NCBI RefSeq assembly: GCF_902713615.1
Contig: NC_052147.1
Coordinates: 202,089,140-202,153,139, forward strand
DNA: 64,000 nucleotides
From: Scyliorhinus canicula
Lineage: Eukaryota
Direction: 5' to 3'
The notes under the pieces are model-generated. The model was not told the DNA's origin. It ran no database searches and saw only the letters and a program-made list of their open reading frames with translations. Below, one piece after another: positions 17,201 to 45,700 of this stretch. How positions within the stretch are numbered: position 1 is the stretch's first letter; each line of letters opens with the position of its first letter. The position numbers and the translations under genes were made by a program.

Positions 17201-20200
17201 TCCTATACATTGCATCTGTCCCAGACGGTGCAAACCTATGGTTTCTGCAGATTGGCAACAGTGCTGACATGCCCCATAATCTAAAATGTTGCCTGGATTG
17301 AGTCCAGATTTTAAAGATGCCATCAGTACTTGGTTTATTGTGAATTTGGCCAGAGAAAATGGGAGAGAGGCAGTAACCAATGGACTTAAACTCTACCCCA
17401 ATCTAGCGCCGGCATCTCCACATCATGGATACCTCTCCATTCATTCAACGACCTAAGTGCGATAGCCAAGGGTTCAGTTACTAGCGCGAACAACAATGGA
17501 CATCCCTGTCTCATGCCCCTGTACAGATGGAAATACCCTAAGCTCACCGTGTTAGTCCGGACGCTGTCAATGGGAGCATTACATAACAGCCTCACCCAGG
17601 AGATAAATGTTGGCCCAAATCCAAACCATCCCAGAACCTTGACGAGGTACCTCCATTCCACCCAATCAAAACTTTCTCTTCATCCATGGAGATGATTACT
17701 TCAGACACCTTCCCCTTAGATGGGGACAGAGGCCTCTACTATTTTCTCCTCTTCAGAGGCTCGAGTACCTTCTGAATCCGATGAGGATCCCTTACCCGAC
17801 CTCTACCTTGTGTTGTATTCACCAGACATCACTCGAAAGAAGGGAACTTATTCTAGTATACGGCACCAATTCCTTCCCCAAAAATACCTGTTAACAAGGC
17901 AGAAAAATACCAAATCCCCAGGCGAGAGTCACTGCATGTGCGACTGTTCACCTCATATCTGCCACCGGAGGTCATGTGTCCCAATCTCAACTACTAGTTC
18001 ACACACACACCTGCACGCATTTACTTGTTCACTGCTCCTTTTCACTTTTTAGTTGGATCTTTCTCACTACCCATTATTGTTATCTATTTTTTTCAGTTGT
18101 GTTCACTCGTTCTGAATCATGTTTGTTCTTATCTCACAAAATCACACGTGCATTTTGGGCCTCTCTTCCTTTCTTATGAACTCCGTGCTCTTTCACTTGT
18201 TCCCCTTTTCCCTTCATTCATTGCACGTCTTTCCCATTGCTCACTCCTGTGTTCTTGTTCTTTCTTCTCCAACCGTTGCATATTCTCTGTTTCCATGCCA
18301 CAGTGTTGGGTGATTAACTTCTTAGTCTAGATTTAACAGTTCACTGAAATTCAAGTTGGGAATTTGAAAATTGTCATCAAACTTCTCAAAAGGGCAATAT
18401 GATTAATGATTTATGTTTCATTTAACTTTAATGATACATCTGTGTTTTAAAATTCATAGATTGGTCCTTCCTCTCATCAGCCGTGAGATGGTGGAATTAC
18501 TAGATAATGGCAGTACAGAGGCTAACTACACCAGTCTCTCGAACTATGCATTTTTATATGGCGTTTTCCCAACAGCACCAAGCGTAGCTATATATGCAAG
18601 TCAGTACAATATGGAAATTGAAATTGTAAGTATGTAGAGGATCACTCTCATTTTAAATTACAGAAAGGAACGTTTTTTACAAAGCAAGGATATATTAAGG
18701 ATGCAATATATTTTTTAAAGTGGGTATTTAAGAGTTTGCACTCTTTTTTGAATTACATTTTCAGTCTTCATATGACTCTCGCGTACTAAGTAACTTAAGC
18801 CTCAGTAAAATTTAGAATGGATACTGCTGGATAAGCTTATAATGCACTTTCCAACCAAAACCATGATGTTTCTTTTCTGTGGAATTACTGACTTTTGAGG
18901 ACTGACGACAGTATGTAAAGGAAACGCTCATTTAGCCAATCATGAGTCAGTGATATAGCATGCATTTTTCTTCAGTTTCTACATCACAATTTATGACTAA
19001 CATGGATATGAAATTATTTTTGTAGGTGACATCCGGGATGGTGATAAATACGTTTGTATCTGCTCCCATTATGTATTTGTCCGCATGGCTTTTGACAATT
19101 CCATCGATGCACACACATGTGTTGCAATCTGAAATTCGAAACATCAGCTTTGACATAAGCATAGTCACCCTCATTTTTCTGGTTAGTATGTAGCTTCTGT
19201 AAAAACATTCCTTTCTAATGTTTCACATCTGCTGAAGCATACTATCACTGCTCTTGAAAAGTTATTTGTTGTTGGCAGTACAGTTATTGTTAGTTTATAA
19301 TCTATGTGGTTGGTTTACATTTTGAGGTGTTGGTTGACTTGCAGTTTAAATTGCTGCTAAATTTTATTTAATTAAAATCTCAATAGTTCACTCAAAATTA
19401 TCTTTTTGGATAATGATGCTTCCAAACTCCAGCAACACCAGTGCAATCCTGTCAAACTTCAGAACTCTCCACCCTGGTTCTGACAAAGACCAGGATCATC
19501 CCCAGTTATAGCAATACCCCAGACTGTCCTTTAGTGCAGCTTAGTCATATTCATCTTAACGACCAGACATTTATCTCGAGTTGCTAAATGCTAGGTATTG
19601 ACTTCCAATGGTATAAGTATACTTTCATTGTTATAAAACCGTGATCTGCACGTTAATGATATGGACACACATACATAATATATGTAGTGTTATTCAGATA
19701 CCAATATACATGATCAATATATGTAAATGTGGTACAATCATTTCAACACTAGATGGCTCACAGTCAAATACTAGAAGAACTGGGGCGGGATTCCCCCCCC
19801 CCCCCCCCCCCCCCCCCCCTCGGCCGGGTGGGAGAATCACTGGGGCGCCACGTGAATCGCGCCACCCTGCCCCGACCCCCGCACGCGATTCTCCCACCCA
19901 CCCCCGAAACCAGTGCCGCGTGAATCACGCCGGGCCGCTCGGAGAATCGCCTCTCGCAGCAATTCTCTAGCGGCCGTGCGTAAACGGCCTAGTCCCGCTG
20001 GCGCCGTCCACACCTGGTCGCTGCCAGCGGGTACTCGTTGCGAAGGCTTGGGGGGGGGTGGCCTGTGGGGAAGGGGGGGCTCCGTTCCCAGGGGAGTCTC
20101 CGATGGGGTCTGGCCCGCGATCGGGGATCACCGATCAGTGGGCCGGCCTCTCTCCCCCCGGCCTACTTCCTTGCGCGACCGGCCCCAGAACCCGGCGCCA

Positions 20201-23200: not shown

Positions 23201-26200
23201 GGACACTAAGGGCAATTTATCATGGCCAATCCACCTAACCTGCACATCTTTCTGCAAGTCCTGGAAAAGTGCACTTCAGTGCTCAGCCACTTGAAGGAGC
23301 ATTCAAAGGTCATAATCAATATCACAGATCTTCAGTAAAACAAAGTAAACATGCAAGTACAGTTTGAAACCCAGCTGTGCGAATGTTGCACTGAAACTTT
23401 ATTTGCATTGTCCCTGATGCCACTCCTTCCTCACCCGTTTGCATTTACTCATGTATACTCCTCCACCAGTGTTTAGATATGATTACTCTGGTGCTTATTC
23501 TGTGACTGCTAATAATGTATTTATAGAGGTACACGCTCAGTCTGATTCCTTTACCATTATTGTACCCTGTACTCTAAAGTGATAGCCGAGGTTACTCAGA
23601 ACACATACTCAGCAACTGACTAATGCATTCTACCATTCTCCAATTCTCCTGTTCTTTATAAATCTTTAATCTTTAACTTCCCGTGACAAAAGCTATGCGA
23701 TCCATCTGTACTTGAATTAAACTTTAAAAAATGTAATTTATCTGAGATGTCTGAAAGTGCTACAATTGATAGATCTTGAATTGTTACACACTTGAATATT
23801 CTGGGGAGCACGGTAGCACAGTGGTTAGCACAGTTGCTTCACAGCTCCAGGGTCCCAAGTTCGATTCCCGGCTTGGGTCACTGTCTGTGCGGAGTCTGCA
23901 CGTTTTCCCCGTGTCTGCGTGGGTTTCCTCCGGGTGCTCCGGTTTCCTCCCACGGTCCAAAGATGTGCAAGATAGGTGGATTGGCCATGCTAAATTGCCC
24001 TTTGTGTCCAAAAGGGGGGGTGGGGTTGCTGCGTTACGGGGATGGGATGGAGGTATGGGCTTGGGTAGGGTGCTCTTTCCAAGGGCTGGTACAGACTCGA
24101 TGGGCCGAATGGCCTCCTTCTGCACTGTAAATTCTATGATTCTATGATTGACTCAGATTCTTATCAGTAGTTGAGTAGCTAAAGCATCACATTTTTGCCT
24201 GGGTCTATTTAGACCTGGTGGTCTCAAAGAGCTAGACCAAGTTAAGAACACCCCTAACTTAGTAGCAAACCTGTTGAACTTTAACCTGGTGTTGTAAGAC
24301 TTATTACTGTGCCCACCCCAGTTCAATGCCGGCATCTCCACATCATTAGTAGCAAATGACTTTACGCACAGCAGTGCCATTATCTGTATAAACAAAAGAA
24401 CTATGAAAATACAAATACTTTCTATTGTTATCATGGTACTGTCATAAATAAATACAATGCCACGGGTAAGCACTATTATTTATATATTAGTTAATATTAA
24501 CCACTTAAAAGTGCTGATTAAAGAATATTTTTAAAAGCTGATTAGTCGAGATGGATCTCAATTTTAAGTTGAAACCATTTATGTACTTACGCAACTTTGT
24601 TCTTTCATATAGGTTTGGTCTGTGGCTGTTATGCTTCTGAGTAAGAAATTTAAGCAGTTGCCACATTTACTCTCTGTTAATTTGCTGCTTGCCCAGGTAA
24701 GGCCCTTAAATTATTAATTATTAGGGTCAGATTTTGTGGTATAACATATTCATTGAGGAATAATTGGGCTGGTGGGTATTGCACATTTTCTGCAGGTACT
24801 TCAACTTGGGGAAATTTTAGCAGAATGGAGCAAATCCCAATGTCGAGCTAACAAGCTGGTCCCAGACTCTCATTTGCTGACAGCAAAACAGACAGCCTCC
24901 TAATTGACAGCCCACCCCCCCACCCACCACCACTGCAAAGTGACCCTTATGTAAATTGCCCAGCACACAGCCCACCACAGAGAAACGTCCCCAATGGTGT
25001 GACTGCACTGGGAGGCTATCTTGATGCAGCTCCCTGGCATTTTACTGACACCCACCACCCCCTTCCAGCCTGTTGTCCAGGCTGATTTTGGAAGGACAGT
25101 AACTAAGAAAAGGAGGCTCTGTTAATTAGGGATGACATGAGTACAATAACGAGAGATTACCTGGGTTCTAAAGATTAAGATTTAGAGTCTGTTTGGGTAG
25201 AGATGAGATGGGGGCGGCAGTGGTTAGCACCAATGCTTCACACCGCTAGGGTCCCAGGTTTGATTCCCGGCTTGGGTCACCGTCTGTGCAGAGTCTGCAC
25301 ATTCTTCCTGTGTCTGCATGGGTTTCCTGCAGGTGCTCCGGTTTCTTCCCACAGTCCAAAGATGTGCAAGTTAGGTGGATTGGCCATTCTAAATTGCCCT
25401 TAATGTCCAAAATGGTTAAACGGGTGGGCTTAAATAGGGTGCTCTTTCCAAAGGCTGGTGCAGACTCGATTGGTCGAATAGCCTCCTTCTGCATTGTTAA
25501 TTCTATGTCTAAATAGCAATGGAAGAAGTCATTTGTGGGTGTAGTTTATAGGACCCTAATAGGAGCAAAATTGTAGAATGAAGTATACAGGAAGAAATAA
25601 TGGGGCTTTGTAAGAAAGGTACAGGTTGAGCATCCCTTATTTAAAATTCGAAAAGATCTGAAATCTGCACTTTTTTTCAAGTGAATTTAATTATATTACA
25701 ATGAGACAGCATTAATTAATGACTTCATAGTGAAGGAACCTCAAGGCAGCAGTGATCATAACATCATTGGATTTTGCATTCAGTTTGAGGGTGAGAAGAG
25801 CCATTCTAAGACCAGTGTCTTAAACTTAAATAAAAGCAATTACAAATGTGTGAATATAGAACTGACTAAAGTAAACTGGGAAATTAGATTAATGGGTAGG
25901 ACATGAGAGATGTAGTGACAGGCATTAAAGGAGATATTTTATAACACTTATCAAAAATGAAAGAGTCTCGGAAAAGAATGCACCATCCCTGGCTAGCTAA
26001 GGAAGTTAAAATTAGTACCAAATTGAAAGAAAAAGTGCACAATTCTACAGAGTAGTGGTAGGTAATAGGGGAAGAATTTTTTAAAAACAATGATTGAAAC
26101 AAAATGAGGGGGAAATTAGAGCACGAGAGAAAATTAACTAGAAATGTAAAATTAGATTGTAAGAGTTTCTACAATTTTTAAAAAAGGAACAGCATAATTA

Positions 26201-29200
26201 AAGGGACAGAGAGTGAAAATAGGGAATTAATGGAGAATAAGGAAATGGTGAAAGCATTGAATGGATGAGGTGAAATGGATTATTCCCTTGTGTTAGTTCT
26301 CACTCCACATGACAGAAGCCCACTCTGGTAGCTATATTCATCAGTACTGAGCACCAAATCACTCTTGGTGATGGATCTTGCACAGTGGTTAGCACTGTTC
26401 CTTCACAGCGCCAGGGTCCATGGTTTGAATCCCGGCTTGGATCACTGTCTGTGTGGAGTTTGCATGTTCTCCCTGTGCCTGCGTGGGTTTCTCCGGGTGC
26501 TCCAGTTTCCTCCCGAAGTCCCGGAAGACGTGCTGTTAGGTAATTTGGACATTCTCTATCTCCCCCCTGTACTCTGACTCATTGTTGTTTGAGATCCGAC
26601 CCACTATGGTCGTGGTATCAGCAAACGCGTAGATGGTGTTGGAGCCGAATTTTACCAGATAGACGCGCGTGTACAGGGCATATAGTAGGGAGCTAAGTAC
26701 GCAGCCTTGCGGGGCCCCAATATTGAGGACTATCATGGAGGAGGTGTCGTTGGTTATCCTTACTGATTGTGGTCGATGGGTCAGGAAGTCGAGAATCCAG
26801 TTGCAAAGGGAGATGCCAAGTCCTAGATTTTGGAGTTTGGCTATGAGCTTGGCTGGTATTATGGCGTTGAATGCAGAGCTGTAGTCAATGAATAGGAGTC
26901 TAATGTCGGAGTGCTTTTTGTCGAGATGCTCCAAGGATGAGTGTAGGGCCAGGGAGATGGCGGCTGCTGTGGACCGGTTGTGGCGATTATGCGAATTGCA
27001 GTGGATTGACCATGCTAAATTACTCCTCAATTGGAAAAACAAAATGAAAAAGCATTACATGACGTATAACATATGAGTATAGTGATCCAATTCCGATTTG
27101 CATGCATCTACTTAATTATAATATCACCCAATACATATTTTTCTCTGTTTATCTAATAACTTCCAGATATAGGTATGATAAGAATATATTTTGACCAGTG
27201 ATGTATAAATTCCCTTCCCCATTGTTCCTTGTTGTAGCGAACACACATATAGCTGCACAGTGTTCAATTGAATCCTTGTATGCGAATTGTGTAAACAAAG
27301 CTTTCTCTATAATCTGGTCCTTGGTTGTTGTCTGTGGATAGTCTGAGCTGAAACAACTGTTTTCTCATCACTAGTTTTCCGTCTTTGAGAATTTAGCAGC
27401 TAGCAGCTTGTGTGGCTTGTATGATTTTTAATCTTTTCAAGGGATAAAGGAAACATTCAGCTGACTTTGTAGAAATAAAAGTCAATTCTGATTCTTATTC
27501 TCTCAATAAACTGAATATTAATCACTTTGTACATTGAATAATTGTTTTCCAGACCATGGCGTGTTTGGCAATGATCATGTGGTATATTATCACCAAGCAA
27601 AATAATCTTCTGGGTCAAGTCCTGGTGTTCATTGTGCTATATAGTTCTTTGTATAGTACATATGTATGGACAGGTAAGGTGCCTAAAATGTAATTAATGT
27701 TAGAAGGCTGTTTCAGCCCAAGCAGTTGCCTTTCCTCATTTGTATGTTGTAATAATTTCTTGCATATGTCCAAGTCGGTAATGGATTTGCTCTGGGAGCC
27801 ATCGACATTGACTCAGGAGCCCAGGATGTCTCATGGCATGATGATGAAAACAAGGATAAGAAAACTCCCTACTGCTTTCCACATATCAGGAGTGTGATGG
27901 AATACTCTCCACTTGCCTGGATGAGTAGAGCTCCAACAACACTCAAGAAGCTCTACATCATTCCCAAGGACAATTAGGAATGAGCAATAAATGCAGGCCT
28001 AGCCAAAAATGCTTGCGTCCCATGAAAGAATAAAAAATAATACAGGACAAAACATCCTGCTTGATTGGCACCACAGCCGCAGCCTTCAACATTCACTCCC
28101 TCTACCACCGGCACACAGTGGCAGCAGTGTGTACTATCTGCAAGATGCACTGCAGCAACTCTCCAAGGTTCATAAAAACTAGGAGCAGGAGTGGTCCCTC
28201 GAGCCTGCTCCGCCATTCAATGAGATCATGGCTGATCTTTTGTGGACTCAGCTCTACTTTCCGGCACGAACATCATCACCCTTAATCCCTTTATTCTTCA
28301 AAAAACTATCTACCCTTACCTTAAAAACATTTAATGAAGGAGCCTCAACTACTTCACTGGGAAAGGAATTCCATAGATTCACAACCCTTTGGGGGAAGAA
28401 GTTCCTCCTAAACTCAGTCCTAAATCTACTTCCCCTTATTTTGAGGCTATGCCCCCTAGTTCTGCTTTCACCTGCCAGTGGAAACAACCTGCCCGCATCT
28501 ATCCTATCTATTCCCTTCATAATTTTATATGTTTCTATAAGATCCCCCCTCATCCTTCTAAATTCCAACGAGTACAGTCCCAGTATACTCAACCTCTCCT
28601 CGTAATCCAACCCCTTCAGCTCTGGGATTAACCTAGTGAATCTCCTCTGCACACCCTCTAAGCGCCAGCACGTCCTTTCTCAAGTAAGGAGACCAAAACT
28701 GAACACGATACTCCAGGCGTGGCCTCACTAACACCTTATACAATTGCAGCATAACCTCCCTAGTCTTAAACCTCATCCCTCTAGCAATGAAGGACAAAAT
28801 TCCATTTGCCTTCTTAATCACCTGTTGCACCTGTAAAGACTGGGCAGCAAATAGATGGCAAAACCACCACCTGCAAGTTTTCCTCCAAGTTACACACCAT
28901 CCTGACTTAAAACTATAGTGCGGTTCCTTCACTATCACTGGGTCAAAATCCTGGAAATTAGTTCCTAACAGCACTTTGGGTGTAATTATGCCACATGGAT
29001 TGAAGCGGTTCATGAAAGCGGCTCACTACCACCTCCTCAAGGGCGAGATGCAGATCATGCCGGCGGAGCGATTCAAGTAACGTGCCATTGGCCTGGCGCG
29101 GAGCCCAATTTGGGGCTCATGCAGAATTCACTGATTGCGCCCGGATCTGTGCCAGGCGCATCAGGGTTTCTAAATTGCACCAGTAGTAATATTACCTGAT

Positions 29201-32200
29201 GAAGGAGCTGAGCTCCGAAAGCTAGTGACTCCAAACAAAACTGTTGGACTTTAACCTGGTGTTGTAAGACTTTTATTTTAAGAACAGACAGCTTATCTGA
29301 TCATTTATTTCATTAATTTGATCTCTGATTAACAACACAGTTAGTTCAGTAAGTTCTTGAAAAATGGTTTAAAATGTCTCCAACCAATTTCTTTTAATAG
29401 GCCTCATAGCACTGTCATTACTTCTGTTGGAGAAAAATGCATTCAAGCAAAGAGGATTCTTCATTATTGCAGGATGGGGGTGAGAAAACTTTGAATTTTC
29501 CACTTTTAATCTGTGCTCCAAAAGGTTTTTTGAAATGAATGAAAAATGAATGAAGTGGTAGTGGGAAATCATTCGTGTTTTCAAATCGTATCTATGGGTA
29601 CAGGAAATGAGAGTGTAATTCAACCACAAACTGAAGACCGGGGCAGGGTAACATGCTTTTCTGTGTTACTGTCACGGAGGTAATGGGTAAGATTCACCCT
29701 TTGGGAGACTATGGGCGAGATTCTCTGCCTCGTGACACCCCAAATGAGTATGCTCTTGTGAATCTGTTCAGTAACTGCCATCTATGATTTCTTTAAGTTA
29801 GGACCTATCAAGTCAAGTTTCACTCTGGGGTCTGTGACTTGTCCTGTATTCACATCAGCTGAGATTGTAACAACCTGAGGATTTGTGAATAGTGCTGAAC
29901 ATTGTGCAATCATCTAGAAACATCCCCATTTCCGACCTTACGATGGAGGGAATATCATTGATGAAGTTACTGGGCTGAGGACACTATCTTGGAGAACTCC
30001 TGCAGTGATGTCCCGGCACTGAGATGTTTGACCTCCAACAACTACAGAAAGCTTTCTTTGTGCTGGGTATGACTCCAACCAGGAGAGAGTTTTCACCCTG
30101 ATTCCCAGTGACTTCAGTTTTGCCAGGGCTCCTTGATGCCATATTCGTTCAAATACGACTTGATGACATGGGCCATCACTCCACCTCACCTCTGGAGTTT
30201 AGCTCCTTTGTCCATGTTTAGATCCTTTGTCCATGTTTAGATCAAGGTTGTAATGAAGTCAGGAATGGCGTAGCCCCAGCGGAATCCAAACTGAGCATCA
30301 GTGAGCAGGTTATTGCTGAATAAGTGCCACCTGATAACATTGTTGATGACTCCTCCCATCACTTTGCTGATGATCAAGAGTAGACTGATGGGGCGGTAAT
30401 TCGCCAGTTTGGATTTTTCCTGCCTTTTGTGGACAGGACATTCCTGGACAATTTTCCACAATGCCAGATGTATGCCAGTGCTGTAACTAAACTGGACCAG
30501 CTTTCTGAATGGTGTTATGCTTGAGTTTTGTTGGAGCTGCATTCATCCAGGCAAGTGGAGAGCATTCACTTACACTCCTGGCTTGTGCCTTGTAGATGAT
30601 GGACAGGCTTTGGGGAATCAAGAGGTGAGTTACTCGCTGCAGGATGAAATGAAAATCGCTTATTGTCACAAGTGGGCTTCAAATGAAGTTACTGTGGAAA
30701 GCCCCTAGTCGCCACAATCTGGCGCCTGTTCGGAGAGGCTGGTGCGGGAATTGAACTGTGCTGCGGGCCTGCCTTGGCCTGCTTTCAAAGCCAGCGATTT
30801 AGCCCTGTTCTAAACCAGCCCCTAAACCAGCCTACGAGGATTTGTAGCATCTGACCTGCTCTAGTAGCCACAGTATTTATATGACAAGTCCAGTTCCGTT
30901 TCTGGTCAATGGAAACTCCCAAGATGTTGATAGTTGAGGATCCAGTGATGGTAATATCATTAAATGTCATTGGGCAATGGTTAGATAATCTATTGTTGGA
31001 GATACTCATTGTCTGGCATTTGTGTGGCAGGGATATTACTTGTCACTTAAAAGCCCAAGCCTGGATATTGTTCGAGTCTTTCTGCATTTGGACATGGATT
31101 GCTTCAGTATTTACGGAGTGGTCTATGGTGCTGAACACTGTGCAGTCATCAACGAAGATCCGTACTTTTGATCTTACGGTGGAAGGAACGTCACTGATGA
31201 AGCAGCTGAAAATGGTTGCACCTAGGAAACTACCTTGAGAAACTCTTGCAGTGATGCTCTGGAACTGATGACATGATTGACCTCCAACAACCACAACCAT
31301 CTTCCTTAATGCTAGGTATGACTCCAACCAGCAGAGAGTTTTCCCCCCGATTCCAAATTACTCCAGTTTTGCTGGAACTACTTGATGCTACACTCTGCGA
31401 GATGCTGCCTTAATGTCAAGGGTAGTCACTCTCACCTCCTGGGGATGATTCTGTCACCCACCTGCCGCAAGAACGCCATTGACCTCAGGCAGGATTCTCC
31501 GGTCACCAGGCGGACGTGGCCGGAGAATCCCACCCCTGGAATTCAGCTCGTTTTTCCATGTTCAAATCAAGGCTGTAATGAGGAGCTGAGTTAATCAACG
31601 CCCATAAAAGGTGCTCAGCAGGCTTGAAGGAGTAACTGAAGCCTCTGAACCATCTAAAGCAGGCCTGATTTTGCACAATGCACATTTTATTTCACATGTT
31701 TGTACATGCATTCACAGCAGTGCTTGAATGTGAGCTAAAGTCACCTTGAAACATATGTAATCAAAAACCTTGATGTCATTACTGAAAGTCTATGTTAAGA
31801 TTAATTGTAGTAAGTTTTCTGCCATGTCCATGTCTATAAGACCCGTACTACAGATGTGACTTTATTTCATGATGCTTGCCTCAGCTAATATCCTTTTTAT
31901 ATTTATTTGTTAATGCATTATTGTGACCCATTATTCTCGCAATTAATAGCTGTAAGTTTTTGTTCTATTAGAATACCGGCATTTGTTGTAGGAATGCTAT
32001 TGATTACTGGTCATCCAAATACACAACTACTGGAAGATTCAGCATTCTTTTATGGAAATACTCAGGTATGAATTAAGTGGCATCTCTGAATCACCTTCAA
32101 AGTATATCGCTAAAACAAGTACAAGTTCTTATATACATTGACTAGCATGGAAATTCTGTCTACAGAGATCTACATTTTCTTCCAACTGTTGTCCTAGAAT

Positions 32201-35200
32201 AATGTAAACCACTGATGCATTTATCACCAACATGCAAGTTTGGAGAAATGTGAAAGTAATTCACTTTTTATATACTTTATTTTGAAATACTTGAAATTTG
32301 GTAGTGTATTACTGTTGAGGTCAAGATGGAACATATTTTTATAATTCAGTGCTTAAATCATCAAAAGAAAAGCTTTAAAAAAATCACTGGAAGAATGAGC
32401 TTTAATAGTTATAGCTTACAATGATGGAATCCACCAGATACATAGAATTTATGACACAGAAACAGTTCTTTTGCTGGCTGTTTCTGCTCCACATCAGCCT
32501 CCCACCCATTATATTTATTTTCAAAGACCAGCAGAAGCTGGGAAATATCACTGCTTTTGCTGTGTGCTCACCAGTGATCTCTTCTTTGTAGTGTAATCTA
32601 TAGGTCAATTTTAATAACTGGCATCAATAAGGCAGCTCCAGGACACAACTTGTGTGCAGGAATAGCTCAGGAGGGGTGCAGATGCGCAGGGTGATGGGCC
32701 CTGATGCTGCAAGTTTGCGACTGAAGAAAAGTTCGGGTAGTTTCTTGGATTTTCATCAGGCTAAGAGGGAAGTGGTAGTTTGACCTGAGAGTATTAAGAC
32801 TCCTCTATTTTTCTGTAGCTCACAGGACCAAGTTGAATGCAAATAGCTTTCTGCAGTGTTTTTGTTTTTGGTTCTGAGCCATGAAAATAAATTAGCTCCC
32901 AAAGTTCAATCCTCGGTCATTGCTTCGTGAACTGATCTGATAGGGAGCCATAAGTGGACCTATAATTAGCCTCAGTGACGTGGAAGAGAACAATGCCTTT
33001 GTGAGATTGCAAATAAAGGAGAAATTATACTGTAATTTGCTATGTTCAGACAATGTGTATCTATTAGAACATTAATTAGGCTTTTGAAAGGTGGTTCTGC
33101 AATACATTATCGTATTTGCTAAAAATTAGATGGATGGGTGGAATTTAACATATGTAGTCTCACTGTTCACTAATGTTAACAAGACTGTTCATATAATTAT
33201 AAAACAGCATAGTTCCAAGTTTTATGTCAACAAATGACTAATTGTGGAAATGCACGGTATTCTTTATTGTATTGAATTGACTGAAGAAGCTCCATCTTGG
33301 TATTGAAATGAAATGAAATGAAAATCGCTTATTGTAACGAGTAGGCTTCAATGAAGTTACTGTGAAAAGCCCCTAGTCGCCACATTCCAGCGCCTGTCCG
33401 GGGAGGCTGATACGGGAATCGAACCGTGCTGCTGGCCTGCTTTAAAAGCCAGCGATTTAGCCCAGTGAGCTAAACCAGCCCCTATTGTCTTAGCTGAGAT
33501 TTGAGAAATATAACTTTACTTGAAAAGCAGCACTGTAAATATCCATTATTTTTCTATTATATTTTTGCAACTTATGTACAGTCTTGGTGTAATGTGACAT
33601 CCCAAGGCAATTCATAGTACATCAAACCTGGGGGAAAAGACTCACTATTTGACTGGAGAGTTGAATTTTGAAGAGGCTTTTGGAAGTGTAAAGAGATGTG
33701 GAGAGTTTCAGAAGAGATTTTCAGAATGTAAGGTCACAATGGTTCATGGATCTGCCACTAGTGTTAGATCGAAGGCAGTGGGGTTGGAGTGACGCAGAGA
33801 AATCTGGACAAGGGGCTGGTTTAGCTCACTCAGCTAAATTGCTGGCTTTTAAAGCAGGCCAGCAGCACGGTTCGATTCCCGTACCAGCCTCCCCGGACAG
33901 GCGCCGGAATGTGGCGACTAGGGGCTTTTCACAGTAACTTAATTGAAGCCTACTCGTGACAATAAGCGATTTTCATTTTTCATTTCAGGAGGAATTGAAT
34001 TAACTGAGAATGCTAGGGCTGTAGGAGATTTCATAGGTAAAATGGAAAGATGCCAGAGTGGATTTTATAATAATGCTAATGCTTTAATGCAATCGGAAAT
34101 GAGCTAGAATTGGCCAGTCAGAACTGGGTACCTAAAGTTGTGAGCTCCGTATGAATTGGAAATTGTAGTGCAGCTCAGAAGGTGGCTGGAAGAACAATTC
34201 CCCCAGTGACGAAGGCAAGGATGTGAATTCCATCGACGGTACGGTTAACCAGGGAAAAGCGACAGGATTGGAAAAACTGGTCAGAGCCTTTACTATCTCC
34301 TTTTTGACATTCATAAGAACTAGGAGCAGGAGTAGGTCATCTGGCCCTTTGAGCCTGCTCCGCCATTCAAGGACTTGAAGACTTAATTGCCTTGATTCCA
34401 GTTTACCTGTCATTTCATAAAGTCACAGAGACTTACAGCCCAGAAATGGGCGATTGGACTTATCATTCTGTACTGGCTCCATAAAAGAACTGTTAAAATT
34501 AGACCCAGCTTTATCCACATAATCATGCATATTGGTTCTCTTCAAATGTATGTCCTATAGTCATCACCATTTCAGTTAATGCGTTCCAAATGTATGTCCT
34601 ATAGTCATCACCATTTCAGTTAATGCGTTCCAGAATGTAACAAAAGAATGGGTGCGATTCAGCGGACTTGAGGTACTGAGAAACATCTCGCTATTCGATG
34701 GTACTTTGCCAGTTTGTTTTGGCCTCGGGCAGATTCTCTCCACCGAGACTGCACTTGGAGGGATTTCCAGCTGGCTAGCTAAAGCTCACCGGTAGGAAAG
34801 GCTCCTCCCAGATCAGATCACTATTTTATCTGTCTGCCCCAATCTCTTTCTCCTCCTCCCTTTTTTTCTGAACCCCGGGCTAGATCCCTAGCAGTGCCAA
34901 CCTGGCATCCAGGCACACTGGCACTGTCCACCCGGTGTCCTAACAGTGCCAGAGTGGCACTGGATCAGCTGTGTGGTGAGCACCAGATAGTGTCCTAGGA
35001 GCCTCTTCACTAACATGCCCAACCAAGGTGAGTGCCTCTGGAATACTGCAGGGTGTTGGAGACAGCTGTGACAGAAAATCACCGTCATCCTGCGACCCGA
35101 GCTTGGGGTCTCCTGAGTCTCGGGCGGAGGGCTGGTGTCCGAGCTGCTTTCAACGTTGGTGCCCGACTCACAGGAGGACTCCGGCTGTGGCACCTGAACC

Positions 35201-36761: not shown

Positions 36762-39700
36762 CGGTGTGCAAACCACGTTCATATGTTTTAGTCCTATCCA
36801 AAGCTGGAGGATTATTTGAAGAGGGTTTTTAGGGTAATCTCTAAGGTGGTGCACGTGAAACTTGACCCGGGCCCTCTCGAGGCCATATTCAGGGTGTCGC
36901 ACCAGCCAGGGTTGAAACGGGTGCGGAGGCAGATGTTGTAGCCTTTGCCTCGTTGATCGCCTGAAGGCGAATCTTGTTGGGGTGGAGGTCAACCTATCCA
37001 CCCTGTGCCCTGGCGTGGTGGGGCACCTGCTGGAATTCCTAACTCTTGAGAAGTTAAAGTATGAACTGAGGGGAAGGATGGAGGGGTTCTACAATTCATG
37101 GGTGTTATTCATTATGCACTTTCGAGAATTGGATGACATCGAACATTAGGGTGGGGGGGGGGGGGGGGGCTGTGTATGTTGATGGTGACTATGGGTGATT
37201 CCTGATTACCTTTTAATTTGATGTTTGTGTTGACATGTTGGTTGTTGTTTGGGGGTTGGTGGGAGGATGGGATTGTTGTTGTTGATGAGGGGATTGACAT
37301 TGTATTTGTTACCATTGATTGTTTGTTGTTGGGTGTAAATTTTGAAGAAAATGTGAAAAGGGGGGAGAATAAAAAAGTATTTTTGAAAAAAAAGAAATAC
37401 CCTCACTCAACACCTCCCACCATTCCAGAACTTATTGTAACCTTTGAAAGAGCTGACAACACTCTCATTCTCCAGTGCTTCTCTCCCATTGCCCCACTCT
37501 GTGGGCTGCTCTTGATTGGTTCCACACATGCCTATCTGGTCGAAGCCAAAGCATCTTCAGCAATTACTTCTTCTCCTGCTCCTACGTCATTACTTCCCAT
37601 GATCTGCCTTTGACCCCCTCCTACTACTATCCCTTCAAGTCTACAGACTTCAACATGTACACTGATCACTGCCATCTTTATCATGGTTACTGCATAGAAG
37701 GAGACTAATCAACACAGCTCTCTGCAAGGGCATTTTAACTAGTTCCACTCCCTTACCCGTTCCTGGAATCCAGTACATTTCACTCTCATGTGTTTCCGTA
37801 CCAGCCTCCCCGAACAGGCGCCAGAATGTGGCGACTAGGGGCTTTTCACAGTAACTTCATTGAAGCCTACTCGTGAAAATAAACGATTTTCATTTCATCC
37901 AATTTCTTTTATAAAGCTTCTCCACTGCTTCCGTCTCCCATTCCATTGTCAGACGGCATTTCCACCATCTTGTTTTCTGTGAGCAAAATTCACCTGCAAT
38001 TTAAAAGTTGGGAAGACTGAATCCATGGTTTTCTGCTCCTGCTGCAAATTCCATTTCCTTGTCATTATTTCCATCCACCTCCCCCACTTCCCTGTCCCTC
38101 CGATTCTGGCCTCTTGTGCTGCGAAGCTTAACATCATAAACTTGGATGTGGAGATGCCGGCGTTGGACTGGGGCGAGCACAGTAAGAAGTCTTACAAAAC
38201 CAGGTTAAAGTCCAACAGGTTTGTTTCAAATTGCTAGCTTTCGGAGCACTGCTCCTTGCTCAGGAGAATGAAGAGGTGGATTCCAGAAAGATATATATAT
38301 AGACAAAGTCAAAGGTGCAAGATAATACTTTGAATGTGAATCTTTGCAGGTAATTAAGTCTACAGGTCTAGACGGAGCAACAGGAGAGAGGGATAATCCC
38401 AGGTTAAAGAGGTGTGAATTATCACAAGCCAGGACATTTGGTAGGATTTCGCAAGCCCAGGCCAGATGGTGGGGGGGTGAATGTAATGCGACACAAATCC
38501 AAGGTCCCGGTTGAGGCCGTACTGTTCTGGCTTGAGACAATTCACACCTCTTTAACCTGTGATTATCCCTCTCTCCAATTGCTCCGCCTGGACCTGAGAC
38601 TTAATTACCTGCAAAGACTTGCATTCAAAGTATCGTCTTGCATCTTTGCCTTTGTCTGTATATATATTTCTGAAACCCACCTCTTCATTCACCTGAGGAA
38701 GGAGCAGTGCTCTGAAAGCTAGTGATTCGAAACAAACCTGTTGGACTTTAACCTGGTGTTGTCAGACTTCTTACTGTGCTCATAAGCTTGTGACAGCAAT
38801 AAAGTGTGACAGATAGCTTACGTATAATGTACTGACGTTTTCAATTATTAGACAGGGCTCCCATGCAAAATGAGGTAGATCGTACAAAGTTTAATGTAGT
38901 AGAACTAAAATGCTGCAGTGAAAGAAATTGTTTGCACGCTAGAGCTTCCATAAAGATGTATATTTTTATTGAGAAAATGTTTCACTATAACACAGTAGAA
39001 ACACAAAACAAATACAATCCCAAATCCCCCCCCCCAAACATCTGATGGTGACCGTCGCCCTGAAATAGGAAATGAAAGGCTGCCACCTCGAGTCAAACCC
39101 TTCTGCTGACCCTATCAGGATGTACTTGACCTTCTCTAAGTACAAAGACTCCATAAGGTCACTCAACCATGACAAAGCACTGGGCCGAACCGGAGTCCGC
39201 CACCCAAGCAGAACTCGTCTCCGGGCTATTAACAAGGCAAAGGCAAGAGCACCTGCCTTCGCCCCCATCTGAAGCTCGAGCGAGTCTGAGACCCCAAAAA
39301 TAATCACTTGCAGACAAGGCTCCAGTTCAATCCCAAGAATCCCTGGCATGCTGTTGAAGAAGGAGACCCAAAAGCTCACAGGTTTAGGACATGACCAGCA
39401 CATGTGTTTATGATTCGCAGGCCCCGAGAACTGCGCTCGCACTTCCACTCCCACCCATCCACACCCTGGTCAGATGTGCCCTGTGCACCACCTTGAGCTG
39501 AATCAAGCTGAGCTTAGCACAGGAGGAGATGGAGTTGACCATGTGAAGAATCTCACGCCACACACCCCTCCATCAAAAACCGGACCCAGCTCTCTTTTCC
39601 ACTTATTTTTACCTCATCCAACAGAGCTTGCTCTATTGACAAAATCCAACGATAAATATCCCGATATCTTCCCCTCCCCCAACCCAGCCAGCAAAAGGAC

Positions 39701-42700
39701 CTGAAAAAACCTAAATAGATTAGACTTCTGAAGTTGGAATTTCCCCAACAAATCTTCAAAACCGGTGAACTTCCCCTCTATAGACGGGATTTGCCGGGGG
39801 TATGGGCGTGAAGACAGCCCCCGCCAGCTGCTGAATTCTCCGGCGCCAGGGTTTTGGCGGGGATGGGAATCGCGCCGGTCGGCGGCCACTGGCAGCGGCC
39901 CCTCCGGCGATTCTCCGGCCCGTGATGGGCCGAGCGGCCGCCCATTTTAGGCCAGTCCCGCCGCTGTAAATTGGACCTGTTACTTACTGGCAGGACCTGG
40001 CTCTGTGGGCGGCCTCTGGGGGGGGGAGGTGAATCTGGCCCCAGGGGGTGCCCACACGGTGGCCTGGCCCCAGATCGGGGCCCACCAATCCACGGGCCGG
40101 CCTGTGCTGTGGGGGCACTCTATCCCTCCGCACCGGCTGCTGTGGATCTCCGCCATGGCCAGTGCGGCGACGAACCCTCCCTGCGCATGCGCTGGGATGA
40201 CGCCAGCACACACTGGCGCTCCCGCACATGTGCCAGTCGGCGGAGGCCCTACCATGCCAAGCCCATTCCGCGCCAATTGGCGCGGCGCCAACCCCGCCGC
40301 CGCCGGCCTAGCCCCTGAAGGTGCAGAGGATTCTGCACCCTCTGGGCGGCCTGACGCCGGAGTGGTTCACGCCACTCCTCGGCGCTGGGACCGCCTGCCA
40401 GGTAGGGGAGAATCCCGCCCTATATGTCCCCAAACTGCACCAACCCCTCCCTCCCCCAAGACCCGAACAATGAGTCCAAAACCAGTGGAAAGAAAATGCT
40501 GATTTCTGCAGATTGGGGCTAATATTGACATGGCACCCAACCTAAAATATTGTTGAAATGTTTCCATATCCGCAGAGTGGCCACCACCACCGGGCTTAAC
40601 GTAAACTTTGCGGGGGGGAAGCGGAAGTGGGGCCATAACCAAGGCCTCGAACGAATACGCTTACAAGCCTGCCTCTTTGGCCCCTCATATGAAATCAGGA
40701 TCTTTAAGCCACCCCTCTACTTTCTCAATATTTGCCGTCCAATAATAAAGTAACAAATTTGGTAGCGCCGATATCGTCCCCTCTGCAGACACTTCCAATG
40801 AATCTGTGGAGTTTTGCGCACCCAAATAAAGGAGGAAATCAATTTAAAGAATGAAATGAAAATCGCTTATTGTCACAAGTAGGCTTCAATGTCGTTACTG
40901 TGAAAAGCCCCTAGTCGCCACATTACAGTGCCTGTTCGGGGAGGCTGGTACGGGAATTGAACCGTGCTGTTGGCCTGCTTTCAAACCAGCGATTTAGCCC
41001 AGTGAGCTAAACCAGCCCCAAGCTAAACCAGCTTTATTCACCTCCACAAAGAAAGATTTGGGAAGGAAAATTGGGTGACACTGAAACCTAGGAAGGGCAT
41101 TAATTTTTACTGACTGAACCTTGCCTGCCAAGGACAAAGAGAGGTTCTCCCATTTTTTTCAATTTGGATTTAACCCCGTTCAGTAGGCTATAAAATTAAG
41201 TTTATGCAGCGAGGCCGAGTGGTGGGCCACCCGAATTTCCCGATAACGAAAGCTAGCTCTGGCCAAGCGAATAGGCAACATCCCCAAATCGGCACCCCCC
41301 TCCGGGGAGTTCACCAGAAAATATTTGCTTCTGTCCAGATTCAACCTTTTCCCGAAATGGAGCCAAAACCCATAACTAACTTCATTATCTGCACTACGCT
41401 GGAGAGAGGATCCATTATACAACAGCAGATAATCTGCATACAAGGACATTCTATGCTCCCTCCCTCCCTTCTTTATTCCCCTCTACCCCGTTGATGACCT
41501 CAATTCTCTGTCCAGAGGCTCAATTGCCAAGGCAAACAATAGGATCGACAATGGGTAACCCTGCCTCATACCTCTATTTAACAAAGTATTCCGAACGCTG
41601 GGCATTCGTACGAACACTAGCAGTGGGGGCTCTATATAAAAGATGGATCCAAGATATAAATATAGGCCCAAACCCAAACCTTCCAAGGACCTCAAACAGA
41701 TACCCCATTCCACCCTCTAAAATACCTCATCAGCGAACATTGAAATAATCACCTCTGGCTCAGGGACTTGAGAGAAATAATATTAAGCAAGCGCTGTATG
41801 TTGGCTGAAAGCTGGCTGCCCTTAACAAACCCAGTCTGTTCCTCCAAAATAACCCCGTAGGCAGGACTCCAAGCACATTGCTAAAACTTTCAGCAATAGC
41901 TTAGCGTCTGCATTCAATAACGAAATAGGGTGATACGACCTATGTACTGTCATATCCTTATCCTTCTTTAAAATCAAAGAGACTGATGCCTGCGCCAATG
42001 CAATTGGCAATACCTCCTAGGACAAGGAATCATTAAACATATTTAACGTCAGTGGGATCAGCTGACCTGCAAATTTCTTGTAAAATTCTATCGGGAATCC
42101 GTCCGGGCCTGTATCCTTACCCAACTGCATCAACCCAATGCATTTCATGATCTCCTCTGGGCTGAGTGGGGGCTCCAACTCATGTCTTCTCTCTTAGTCT
42201 ACAACTGGGATAGACAAGCCATGCAAAAATTCCATCATGGGCAACATATCATCCAGGGTTTCTGACTTAGAAAGTCTGCGACAAAACGCCTCAAAAACCT
42301 CATTGACCTTCCATGGGGCTGAGACCAACCTGCCACTAAAGTACTTCAGCTGTACTATCTCCCAGGAGGCAGCTTGCCGCCTCAGTTGGTGCACTAAAAG
42401 GCAACTGGCCTTCTCCCCATATTCATAAAATGCCTCCCTCGAGCGTCACAGCAGATGCACTGCCTTGCCCGTTGAGAACACAGCAAAGTCCATCTGTAAT
42501 TTCTTCCTGCTTGCCAATGACTCTGGTGTCGGGGTAAGCAAGTACTGGCAGTCCATCTGAAGGACGGAATCAAGCAACCTCTGTCTATTGATCCTTTAAC
42601 TCTTCTCTTACTGTACCCTATAAGAGATTATCTCCCTCTTAATGACCACTGTCTGAGCCTCCGACAACGTGGAAGGCGAGATAGTCTCACTTCTATTAAA

Positions 42701-45700
42701 ATCAATGTACTCCCCAATGGTGGAGGATACCCCCACACACGGAAGCTGGATATGATGTTGTACGCCAGCAACATCACATCCAGCTTCCATGTGGGGCGCT
42801 GAGCGGGGCCTCACCCCAACACAAAATCCACAAAATGTGGAGCATGATCTAAAATACCTATTGCCAAATATCCAAGTAAGGAGAAACCTATACCCCCCCC
42901 CCCCCCCCCCCCCCCCCCGAATTAGCTGGTGCGAGTCTAGATCGGGAATAGAAGCCAACAAATTGTTGACGAAAGCTGTATCATCCCAGTTCAGTGCATA
43001 TAAATTAACTAGATCCACCAGAGTACCCACTAACAATCACTACCTCCATTTTGAAAGAGCTTCCAAAAAGATATGATCCATGTATGAATAGAAATATGAC
43101 CAAAGATCTGTTTGCTACAAGAGTTGGGCTGTATTCTGTAATTTCAGTTGATCTGATCCTCAAATTCACACTTTTTTGAAGAGCGTGTTTTTGTGTTTTT
43201 GTTTCCTCCTTCACATGTTTCTCATGTACAGGTTATTAGTACTGCATTGGTACTGTCCTGCAGCATTGTTCTTGCGGGCTCATCATTGATGTTACTGAGT
43301 CGGAACAGGCATAATAATGCTTACCAGATACTACAGCGCAACTCTATTTCCAGCAATACTAGTGTGGACCCCAGACTGAAAGAAATCCAACCAACAGCTA
43401 AAAATGTAGCACCTGTTGCAGAATTTGCAACTGGAGAAAGTGAAGGTATTTTTTATTTACTTGATACAGCATGGAATGACAGATGTGGCATTTGTTACCT
43501 CCTTCCTCCTTAAAACATCTATATGGGCGGCACAGTGGTGCAGTGGTTAGTACTGCTCCCTCGCAGCGCCGAGGACCCGGGTTCGATCCAGGCCGTGTTC
43601 ATTGTCCGTGTGGAGTTTGCACATTCTCCCCGTGTCTGCGTGGGAGAAATGCTCTCTCATGACTTGGTGATTGTCAAATAATGGGGTCTAAGTTTCACCC
43701 ATTCGCACATCTTTTTGGTAGAGTTGGAGGTTTTTCACACCCATTTCTGGGAATTCCACTTCAAAGCCACAAGCTCTACAAAAAATATTGTTAACTAGTT
43801 TCTTAAATTATATGAATAAGGGCAGTCATTAACCACAGGAAAGATTTGTTGCATTTTAATCACTTCTCAGTGAGATATCTTGAAAGTTTGTTTGCAATTT
43901 AATCTCCAGCCAGATATGATGGCTAGTTCCAGGGCCTTGTGATTTTACAAGTATGTTTGTAGGAAAGAAAAGGTCACATGCCTCCTCAAATCCATTTTGT
44001 TTCTTGGGCGTGATTCAACGACCCTTTTACGCCTGGTGCAGGGCGCGATTCAACGACCCTTTTACGCCTGGCGCAGGGCAAGATCCAAATCTGAATATTT
44101 AAATTAGCCTAATGACTCAGACCTGGACACAGATTCACCCGGGTCTCACAGGCAGATCCTGGGGCACCTCTCCAGGATGCCGTTTAGTGCTGGTTACAAC
44201 TTGGTCCGTTACAACCAACAACCTGGTTATATAAAAGTCTTTATAAAAGTCTTTCCCTAGGTACGGTGGCACAGTGGTTAGCAGTGCTGCCTCACAGTGC
44301 CAGGAACCCGGGTTCAATTTCAGCCTGGGTGACTGTGCGGAGTTTGCACTTTCTCCCCGTGTCTGCATGGGTTTCCTCCGGATGTTCCGGTTTCCTCCCA
44401 CAGTCCAAAAATGTGCAGGTTAGGTGGATTGGCCATGATCAATTGCCCCTTAGTGTCCAAAGCGAAGCAGGTTAGGTGGGATTATGGAGTTACAGGGATA
44501 AGGCGAGGAAGTGAGCCGAGGTCGGGTGCTCTTTCAGCGGGTCGGTTCTGTGGGATGGTTTGATGAGATCTAGAATGGCCACCGTCAGGCCTTCTCTACA
44601 ATTGGGGCCCCCAATGGCAGAAGCCCACTGAGAGCTATTGGCAAATCAGAGGCCAGCAGTCTTCATACCATGAAAACCAGTGAAAGCGGATATTGATGGC
44701 GGCTGTGCACTCAGCAGAGGCCTAGGATTATCGTGAGACCCCAGATCAAGTTGAGGGAAGGTGGGATGGAGGTGTCCCAGGAGAGGGGGAGGTGTTTCGG
44801 ACGCAATGGCTTGGTTTGGCTTGCAGTGGCCCAGCCCTCTAAAGCTGGATCCCTCGATTGGGCGCAGACTGCCTGACTATGATCGGCCCATACATCACCT
44901 CCAGAAGGCCACTGGCAAATTCCAGCAGGGTTTGCTGGGTGACCTTCCAAGGGTGTCGGAGCACCTTGGAGCCGGTGGCTCCCGAGTCCAGCAAAACAAA
45001 AATCAATGATTAATTTTGTCACTCTGGGTACTTTGCGACCATCTAAGTTTGGAAACAGCAAGCCCACAGTTCTTTTACAAGAGTGCTGATTCTTAATGCA
45101 ATAATTAATTAAGTTGACAGCCAACCGACGTACACCGTAATTGCGGTCCCTTCTTCAGATAAATTTTAAATGAGATTCCAACGCCAGTGACAGTCCTGTC
45201 AGGCAAAGAATCATGACTCCAAGGCCTCTGGATTTGAACGACAGATGCTTCATTGTACAGAGCAATGCGAGTCCTCCCTCCTGTCCTTGAGAAGAAAAAT
45301 CCACTTGTGGCTCGACCGGGCCTACTTCAAGACCCTACCCCAGGAGCACCCAGGGAGGAACAGACCACGGGACTCAGCCCAACCTGCCTCAGGAAGCCCC
45401 TGCCCATGACCCAGGAAACCCGAAATGGCGGAGACCCCGCGCGAAGACCCGAATGTGCTGCAAGGTATTCCCGTGCCCGCAGAACGCCGTGGTCCCCGAC
45501 AGCGTCCTGGACCCCGCCAGATGCAACCACCTACCTTCCACAAGGGCTGACGTCTCCCATCGGATCCCGGCACCATCCATCCGCAGCCGCCGAACGAGGA
45601 AGCGAGGGAAACGCAGCGGTCTGTAGGTTAGACTGAAGCAATGCGGTTTCAAGACCCCTCTCCCCAGCATACTCCTGGCAAATGTCCAAGTGATCGAAAA

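Follow-up and report, generated by a model that had tools for sequence, protein, structure and literature searches.

A single minimal hammerhead ribozyme of a Penelope-like element (PLE) shows no detectable cleavage and dimers show low cleavage, and pairs of such hammerheads on opposite strands, 100–700 bp apart, are reported (Cervera & De la Pena 2014, PMC4209133). The PLE hammerhead of Anolis cut only in the presence of the PLE protein and left no RNA-seq ends at the site, and the optional PLE 'tail' was attributed to reverse transcription that starts internally (Frangieh et al. 2024, PMC11167929). Non-LTR retrozymes are defined by tandem units which yield circular RNAs (PMC7229834; 10.64898/2026.07.22.740005), and about 43% of the monomeric retrozyme offspring of Xenopus are placed in introns (Li et al. 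2026 preprint, 10.64898/2026.07.22.740005). Domesticated hammerheads of amniotes are canonical type I ribozymes which make tertiary loop contacts and are conserved across classes (PMC6155905). Here, we analysed a hammerhead motif located in an intron of the shark GPR155 gene, within a 64-kb stretch of DNA (referred to as the window; all positions are those of the window). The reading which we favour, at a probability of roughly 85%, is that the motif is inert and sits in a dead remnant, solitary and heavily 5'-truncated, of an abundant PLE-type retroelement or of a gene-less derivative of one.

The preliminary description of this DNA had placed a hammerhead with an intact core on the sense strand, and the letters at this position are indeed those of a minimal type I hammerhead: UUAC / CUGAUGA / A / GGAGC-UGA-GCUCC / GAAA / GC / U / A / GUGA. 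Its parts are as follows.

29192–29228, + strand: minimal type I hammerhead motif, 37 bases, read from the sequence
29192–29195 with 29225–29228, + strand: helix I, 4 bp, one U-G wobble
29196–29202, + strand: core box CUGAUGA
29203, + strand: unpaired A between A9 and G10.1, extra relative to the standard core
29204–29208 with 29212–29216, + strand: helix II, 5 bp, with the loop at 29209–29211
29217–29220, + strand: GAAA
29220–29223, + strand: self-complementary palindrome AGCU
After A29224, + strand: predicted cut site, placed from the motif layout

We checked the core at C3 U4 G5 A6 N7 G8 A9, G12 A13 A14, the A15.1-U16.1 pair and position 17 (A, C or U), and all letters of a type I core are present (29196–29202, 29217–29220 and 29223–29224), as is the G10.1-C11.1 pair (G29204 with C29216). 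A strict minimal-hammerhead descriptor was then applied, which asks for helix I of 4 bp, the CUGANGA box with an optional bulge after it, helix II of at least 4 bp closed by G-C, GAAA, a palindrome at the 15.2/16.2 pair, and a U whose next base is A, C or U. On both strands of the window it found a single site, 29192–29228, and it found none in 200 dinucleotide-preserving shuffles. The search with Rfam hammerhead models (Hammerhead_1, _3, _II, HH9 and HH10), which had been proposed as a check, gave no match at the gathering score in the whole window and none at E<=10 over 29100–29320. Five weak Rfam matches, to a CRISPR repeat, bacterial sRNAs and a miRNA, were taken as chance. No U3-A8 variant hammerheads were found in the window, and a 16-nt match at 31194–31209, which lacks both helix II and GAAA, was likewise attributed to chance.

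The motif opens a short repeat fragment, which belongs to a family with four copies in the window, the fragment included (BLAST, nhmmer).

29193–29273, + strand: Penelope-type repeat fragment, about 81 bp long (BLAST, nhmmer), 5'-truncated at the edge of the ribozyme
38175–38781, both strands: head-to-head palindrome of two family copies of about 300 bp each (self-reverse-complement match of 82% over 619 columns)
C3 at 38693, + strand: motif of the + arm of the palindrome, with G-U at the 10.1-11.1 pair
C3 at about 38262, − strand: motif of the − arm of the palindrome, with a G8-to-C change
24259–24344, + strand: fourth family copy, reduced to the sequence 3' of the ribozyme, with an extra 3' extension of about 40 nt

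The fragment corresponds to positions 228–308 of a family model of about 380 positions, and its BLAST matches lie at 38691–38769 (90%) and 38264–38187 (86%). Since it aligns to the three other copies in the window and this homology begins at the 5' edge of helix I, the claim of an 80-bp remnant starting at the ribozyme holds. The 3' boundary is ambiguous (29272 to 29279); the 3' ends differ between family copies, some of which have an extra stretch of about 40 nt. The unpaired A equivalent to 29203 is present in both sister copies of the palindrome. The intronic motif has kept an intact core, whereas each of the two neighbouring copies has a change in the core or in a helix; an intact core in some copies is, however, expected by chance. 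The intronic fragment is about 10–14% diverged from its sister copies, as any old repeat would be. In addition, RNA reads by the hundreds stem from other genomic copies; they carry C, not A, at 29240 and diverge from the locus before 29233 and after 29272. The family consensus derived from these reads across the ribozyme is AAGGAGCMGTGCTCCGAAAGCTCGTG.

A chance look-alike without ribozyme ancestry, for which one could cite the ordinary stability of the monomer fold (z -1.44) and the missing Rfam hammerhead match, is refuted in practice by the family alignment, as the motif is common, position for position, to other family copies and to the read-derived consensus; the empty shuffles also speak against it.

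Cervera & De la Pena 2014 list four hallmarks for the minimal hammerheads of PLEs, and the motif has them all: the unpaired nucleotide, G10.1-C11.1, the palindromic 15.2-16.2 pair and a multi-copy consensus family. It also has the short 4-bp helix I. A PLE ORF was sought in the window and rejected: the RT ORFs resemble those of LINEs and have no link to the repeat family, and GIY-YIG was not found in the 18 scanned of the 32 window ORFs of at least 130 aa. Because no PLE RT or GIY-YIG ORF in the window is linked to the family, a Penelope-like origin of the fragment can only be inferred, from the motif architecture and the insertion pattern. We found no description of the shark family in the literature searched, where one cartilaginous fish is covered by the 2026 preprint.

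The copy in the intron stands alone: 27600–30000 contains no tandem repeat of the unit, and the motif occurs once in the intron, so that the head-to-tail tandem required of a non-LTR retrozyme is absent from the locus. No inverted partner was found near the motif, and the nearest motif on the same strand is 9,497 nt away. The motifs of the palindrome lie on opposite strands, about 430 bp apart. No target-site duplication was seen, with no common word of at least 5 nt between the flanks 29150–29195 and 29268–29315.

Folding of the motif gave a minimum-free-energy structure which retains helices I and II, with pairing probabilities in sequence context of 0.9 for helix II and about 0.35 for helix I; the stability of the monomer fold is unremarkable. 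A type I hammerhead requires three helices, and the third does not form in the monomer because A15.1-U16.1 would close a 2-nt loop. According to these models, helix III would be possible only between two copies, and the isolated AGCU/AGCU duplex amounts to only -2.5 kcal/mol. The cofold of two copies was a domain-swapped duplex formed via the near-palindromic helix II and not a catalytic helix III dimer, and it was set aside as not meaningful. The preliminary description's view of a minimal type I, PLE-like hammerhead whose palindromic helix III needs a dimer thus agrees with the published minimal architecture, the PLE label being the inferred part. With neither loop 1 nor a stable helix III, the motif does not attain the monomer-competent fold with loop-loop contact of the RECK/CTCL type.

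We then placed the motif within the gene.

27549–27673, + strand: upstream GPR155 exon, matching human residues 422–461 (phmmer against PDB chains of GPR155/LYCHOS, E 6e-9), within a transcript contig
27674–29400, + strand: GPR155 intron bearing the motif, 1,727 nt, GT..AG
29401–29479, + strand: 79-nt GPR155 exon downstream of the motif, with splice joints on both sides and a frame that is open and continuous with both neighbour exons
31972–32067, + strand: next GPR155 exon, with a splice joint, matching human GPR155/LYCHOS residues 491–520 (PDB)

The motif lies on the sense strand of GPR155, and 172 nt separate its end from the exon at 29401–29479; the earlier claim of a GPR155 exon about 170 nt downstream was therefore confirmed by splice joints and by the match of the neighbour exons to human GPR155/LYCHOS. 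A PDB sequence search with the 26-aa peptide of the small exon, in two frames, gave no match because the query is too short, and Pfam was uninformative on the short exon peptides. The splice joint 27673|29401 was found in three raw-read RNA runs (X20–X22, with 4, 8 and 11 reads) and in one transcript contig of 2,708 nt, and the GT..AG joint across the next intron, 29480–31971, in three RNA runs (10, 8 and 1 reads) and in the transcript contig as well. Thus, splicing of the intron bearing the motif is about as frequent as that of the next one.

The preliminary description had also suggested looking for RNA ends after A29224. Among the piles listed there is no pile of molecule ends at 29224/29225, while the locus-specific depth in the intron is only about 4 sense reads (recognized by the local A at 29211), and nearly all reads over 29233–29272 derive from other family copies. 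The read evidence on cleavage at the locus is uninformative rather than negative: low-level cleavage is compatible with it because the locus-specific coverage of the intron is almost nil, and a cut pre-mRNA would go unseen because the libraries were oligo-dT selected. Where reads of other copies extend to the site, most of them continue past it (median overhang of 35–36 nt in the two runs X21 and X22), and hence most RNAs of the other family copies appear uncut.

Taken together, the hammerhead motif most likely does nothing to GPR155. We propose that the parent element carried a minimal hammerhead at the end region of its repeat unit, and that this hammerhead would have processed multimeric element RNA, with two copies paired by the palindromic AGCU helix III and/or assisted by an element protein. 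The core would then happen to be intact in the GPR155 intron copy, and the motif would be transcribed with the intron, spliced out and degraded, with no measurable cutting of the pre-mRNA, because it is a single unit with neither helix III nor a nearby partner. The structure of the motif and the published biochemistry suggest that cleavage is absent. The proposal that the motif cuts the pre-mRNA and affects splicing or transcript yield thus lacks support (the copy is solitary, the junction counts are similar and published monomers are inactive), and the inert relic, which had been offered as the alternative, is the better reading, with no same-strand partner within 9.5 kb and splicing like that of the next intron.

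It is unlikely, in our view, that the motif cuts a small share of the GPR155 pre-mRNA, via trans pairing with family transcripts or via folding assisted by a PLE protein, so that yield would be slightly lower when PLEs are expressed. An intact core lies on the sense strand, and the same RNA samples are rich in family transcripts, but a helix III formed in trans would have just 4 bp and -2.5 kcal/mol before any concentration penalty, and in context only about one structure in three of the ensemble has helix I formed. PLE minimal hammerheads cut as dimers, though slowly, and the Anolis PLE hammerhead is protein-assisted (PMC11167929); here, however, no end pile appears at the site among those listed (with about 4 locus-specific reads), junction counts are normal and reads of family copies mostly cross the site.

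A broader form of this idea is more doubtful still. By analogy with Anolis, where the PLE protein helps the ribozyme, an expressed PLE protein or abundant RNAs could switch on intact, sense, solitary minimal hammerheads in host introns, and bursts of the element might then cut many host pre-mRNAs, GPR155 included, whether as collateral damage or in a crudely regulatory way.

Very improbable is a domesticated ribozyme that regulates GPR155 splicing, in the manner of the conserved amniote RECK, CTCL and DTNB hammerheads. The motif is intronic, on the sense strand, with an intact core and 172 nt from a small 79-nt exon, but the amniote ribozymes are canonical, with tertiary loop contacts and conservation across classes (PMC6155905), while the motif lacks loop 1 and a stable helix III, matches none of Rfam HH9, HH10 and Hammerhead_1, and has diverged from its sister copies as any old repeat. 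DNA runs of a second species contain 23–27% of the sampled words of 29120–29400, so that a related species has at least part of this region, or else a sequence akin to it; this share, however, indicates only similar sequence, of roughly 95% identity, and is silent on selection.

The intronic motif, most likely inert, is one more ordinary copy among the dispersed ones of a known retroelement class that bears ribozymes, and is of little consequence as it stands. Its only wider use is as one data point on whether intact-core sense copies are under-represented in introns in comparison to antisense or core-mutated copies. A deficit in introns of sense copies with an intact core would give a first sign, at the population level, of solitary PLE hammerheads cutting host transcripts in vivo.

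Compared with the amniote RECK, CTCL and DTNB hammerheads (Rfam HH9/HH10), which are intronic, sense-strand, type I and thought to be retroelement-derived (PMC6155905), the shark motif shares these traits. It is, however, minimal, dimer-dependent and without an Rfam match, whereas the amniote ribozymes are full, monomer-active, deeply conserved and have loop-loop contacts. Animal non-LTR retrozymes (Cervera & De la Pena 2020, PMC7229834; Li et al. 2026) are gene-less PLE-related repeats with type I hammerheads whose offspring are scattered through the genome as monomers, and in both respects the shark family is alike; unlike retrozymes, the shark locus holds a single 81-bp fragment with no tandem repeat. 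In the Poseidon PLE of Anolis carolinensis (PAc, PMC11167929), as in the shark family, the hammerhead lies shortly upstream of where genomic copies end, 3' ends are variable with an optional short 'tail', and an AC-rich hairpin follows the cut site (29230–29248 in the shark). PAc copies end about 85–92 nt after the cut, whereas shark copies end about 48 nt and about 90 nt after it; PAc has protein and activity data, and the shark family is known here from sequence and RNA reads. Metazoan PLE minimal hammerheads (PMC4209133; Lunse, Weinberg & Breaker 2017, as cited in PMC6765202) lie in terminal repeats of elements coding for RT and a GIY-YIG endonuclease, while the shark family is known here without a linked RT/GIY-YIG ORF in the window, and helix II, of 6–8 bp in Schistosoma and Drosophila, has 5 bp in the shark. 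The shark motif shares with them the CUGANGA and GAAA boxes, the unpaired nucleotide at A9/G10.1, G10.1-C11.1, the 4-bp helix I with no loop 1, and a palindromic AGCU which, with no helix III of its own, would pair only in a dimer. As in these metazoan elements, there are many dispersed single copies, and the opposite-strand pair has its counterpart in the shark sister copies at 38.2–38.8 kb.

The hammerhead-ribozyme motif lies on the sense strand of a 1,727-nt intron of GPR155. The GT..AG splice joints from 27673 to 29401 and from 29479 to 31972 were found in raw reads of three oligo-dT RNA runs and in one assembled transcript contig. Since all GPR155 junction reads map to the minus strand in an apparently stranded library, and GT..AG reads on the plus strand, the gene is placed on the plus strand. 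Its exons in this region are:

18488-18625, GPR155 exon, matches human GPR155/LYCHOS residues 297-342 (E 5e-17)
27549-27673, plus strand, GPR155 exon, matches residues 422-461 of the same protein (E 6e-9)
29401-29479, plus strand, 79-nt GPR155 exon, open in the frame joining both neighbouring exons
31972-32067, plus strand, GPR155 exon, matches residues 491-520 (E about 1e-3)

The motif is 172 nt from the downstream exon 29401-29479, upstream of any plausible branch point; the splice joints and flanking-exon matches thus bear out the preliminary description, which had put a sense-strand site about 170 nt before a GPR155 exon. The same intron holds a repeat at 28273-28863 that RNA reads cover very deeply on both strands (to about 290x in the raw-read runs), with sharp read starts at 28289 (+) and 28548 (-), and diverged copies at about 62960-63409, 1267-1489 and 5828-6102.

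The proposed hammerhead at 29192-29228 (+) was confirmed in the sequence, which reads UUAC CUGAUGA A GGAGC UGA GCUCC GAAA GC U A GUGA. In hammerhead numbering its parts, all on the plus strand, are:

29192-29195 with 29225-29228, helix I, four pairs, one of them U-G
29196-29202, C3-A9
29203, extra unpaired A
29204-29208 with 29212-29216, helix II, closing pair G10.1-C11.1
29217-29220, G12-A14 plus A15.1
29221-29222, G15.2 and C16.2
29223, U16.1
29224, A17
between 29224 and 29225, predicted cut

A strict minimal-hammerhead descriptor, run on both strands of the window, returned this single site and none in 200 dinucleotide-preserving shuffles, and a loose descriptor (the two boxes plus any helix II) returned two sites against 0.035 expected; it can be concluded that the motif is present at 29192-29228 and not by chance. 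The suggested Rfam search gave no family at gathering score over the whole window and no match to the hammerhead models in 29100-29320 even at E<=10, so that membership was not obtained, as is expected of a motif that has no helix III hairpin. The stability of the monomer fold is unexceptional (z -1.44); folded with its local flanks, the motif has a stable helix II (pair probability 0.9), and helix I is present in only about one third of the folding ensemble.

The motif belongs to a repeat family. BLAST of 29150-29300 against the window matched 29194-29272 to 38691-38769 (90%), 29236-29272 to 24266-24302 (95%), and the opposite strand at 38264-38187 (86%); a profile built from two long copies found exactly four in the window. 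The motif-bearing copy covers positions 228-308 of a family model of about 380 positions, thus the family extends at least about 225 nt further 5', and some copies run about 40 nt further 3' (...CTTACTGTGCTCACCCCAGTCCAACGCCGGCATCTCCACATC). Homology of the motif-bearing copy begins at the 5' edge of helix I (about 29192-29194), in agreement with the earlier view of a repeat remnant starting at the ribozyme. The family has UCAC in the 5' strand of helix I, and its replacement by UUAC accounts for the U-G wobble. This copy is 10-14% diverged from its sisters. Two of these, each of about 300 bp and hammerhead-bearing, form a head-to-head palindrome at 38175-38781 (607 bp, arms 82% identical) with the two motifs on opposite strands, some 430 bp from each other; in one arm C11.1 has become U, giving G-U at the 10.1-11.1 pair, and in the other G8 has become C, a change that abolishes cleavage in the Poseidon Penelope-like element (PLE) of Anolis carolinensis (PMC11167929). 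The copy at 24259-24344 is reduced to sequence lying 3' of the ribozyme, and its homology starts a few bases past the equivalent of the predicted cut, where the alignment is too ambiguous for an exact start. Around the motif-bearing copy we found no tandem repeat of the unit, no nearby inverted partner and no flanking target-site duplication.

RNA reads at the motif locus say almost nothing about cleavage. Read depth over 29061-29454 comes from other family copies: nearly all reads have C, not A, at 29240, they occur on both strands, and they depart from the local sequence ahead of 29233 (consensus AAGGAGCMGTGCTCCGAAAGCTCGTGTTTG) and beyond 29272. The local A at 29211 is present in only about four reads of sense orientation, and at this depth the piles of molecule starts or ends that were listed include none at 29224/29225. 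Where reads of other copies extend to the site, they mostly continue past it (median overhangs 35-36 nt in runs X21 and X22), thus in these samples the majority of such RNAs appear uncut, and junction reads are similarly frequent for the motif-bearing intron (23 in total) and the next (19). Both are weak evidence on cleavage, since poly(A) selection of the libraries leaves room for a minor cut fraction.

Other transcribed repeats were seen nearby. The short, highly expressed repeat at 30637-30833 is probably a tRNA-derived SINE, as its read overhangs GGTACGGGAATCGAACCGTGCTGC resemble a tRNA T-arm; copies lie at 1555-1668, 33305-33418, 33876-33978, 37793-37906 and 40851-40956. Reads joining 26555 to 30716/30733 on opposite strands (46, 30 and 24 in raw-read runs X20, X21 and X22) probably reflect these repeats in a different arrangement elsewhere in the genome, not this locus. 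Reads leading from 31583 back to 30287, the two places always separated by the same 28 added letters, are present in each of the four runs (48-83 in those of raw reads; depth 41.7 in the assembled contigs of X1) and could represent a repeat-derived transcript from elsewhere or back-joined RNA.

Most likely, the motif does nothing at GPR155. Helix III is impossible within a single copy; the AGCU/AGCU duplex between two copies is computed at -2.5 kcal/mol, and the closest motif on the same strand lies 9.5 kb further downstream, within a different intron. Published biochemistry is in line with this: cleavage by one PLE minimal hammerhead alone was undetectable, and that by dimers and trimers was poor and seen mostly at unphysiological Mg2+ levels (PMC4209133); reviews likewise describe dimer dependence and very low rates. 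For a lone copy of this kind, the suggestion that it cuts GPR155 pre-mRNA finds no support, and the fallback offered with it, an inert relic, is the best reading: the copy would most likely be transcribed within the intron, spliced out and decay. That it cuts at a low level, in trans or aided by PLE protein, is conceivable, and we consider this unlikely and unsupported. In the Anolis element, the only PLE studied with its own protein, the hammerhead cuts only if that protein is present, the cut is dispensable for insertion in vitro, and no RNA-seq ends fall at the hammerhead site (PMC11167929). A domesticated regulatory ribozyme of the RECK/CTCL type is very unlikely, as those hammerheads are complete, monomer-active and deeply conserved (PMC6155905), whereas this motif is minimal and its copy as diverged from its sisters as any old repeat; a second species' DNA runs contain 23-27% of sampled words of 29120-29400, which would fit similar sequence at roughly 95% identity and is silent on selection. 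A chance look-alike is excluded by the family alignment.

The reverse-transcriptase (RT) ORFs of the window are LINE-like:

45690-48470 (+), 59560-60267 (-) and 62873-63988 (-), LINE-like RT ORFs (Pfam RVT_1, E 1e-22 to 5e-25)
57871-58359 (-), ORF adjoining a LINE-like RT ORF, weak zf-RVT match

They were rejected as PLEs, with no GIY-YIG among the 18 ORFs scanned of 32 of at least 130 aa. A 674-aa ORF at 55445-57469 (+), for which Pfam gave no family at E<=0.001, is long for vertebrate intronic or intergenic DNA and possibly encodes a transposon protein. Since the family has no link to an RT or GIY-YIG ORF in the window, we infer its PLE origin from the motif's architecture and the insertion pattern; a gene-less, retrozyme-like PLE derivative is equally compatible.

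Minimal hammerheads occur in the terminal repeats of all PLEs, and thousands of single copies are scattered in fish, coelacanth, amphibian and reptile genomes (Cervera and De la Pena, PMC4209133). The motif agrees with them feature by feature, in the unpaired nucleotide between A9 and G10.1, the G10.1-C11.1 pair, the palindromic 15.2-16.2 pair, the short helix I and membership of a consensus family, which supports its preliminary identification as PLE-type. Their opposite-strand pairs lie 100-700 bp apart, as do the sister copies at 38.2-38.8 kb (about 430 bp). The variable 3' ends of family copies, about 48 or 90 nt past the cut site, are reminiscent of the 30-40 bp "tail" that PLE insertions may carry, which Frangieh et al. 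attribute to two internal sites of the RNA at which reverse transcription starts (PMC11167929). On that reading, 29272-29279, where the motif-bearing copy gives way to AT-rich DNA, may be its true 3' end, and the copy would represent the last 81 nt or so of a template that was copied no further than the ribozyme. The motif is thus a new instance of an already known kind.
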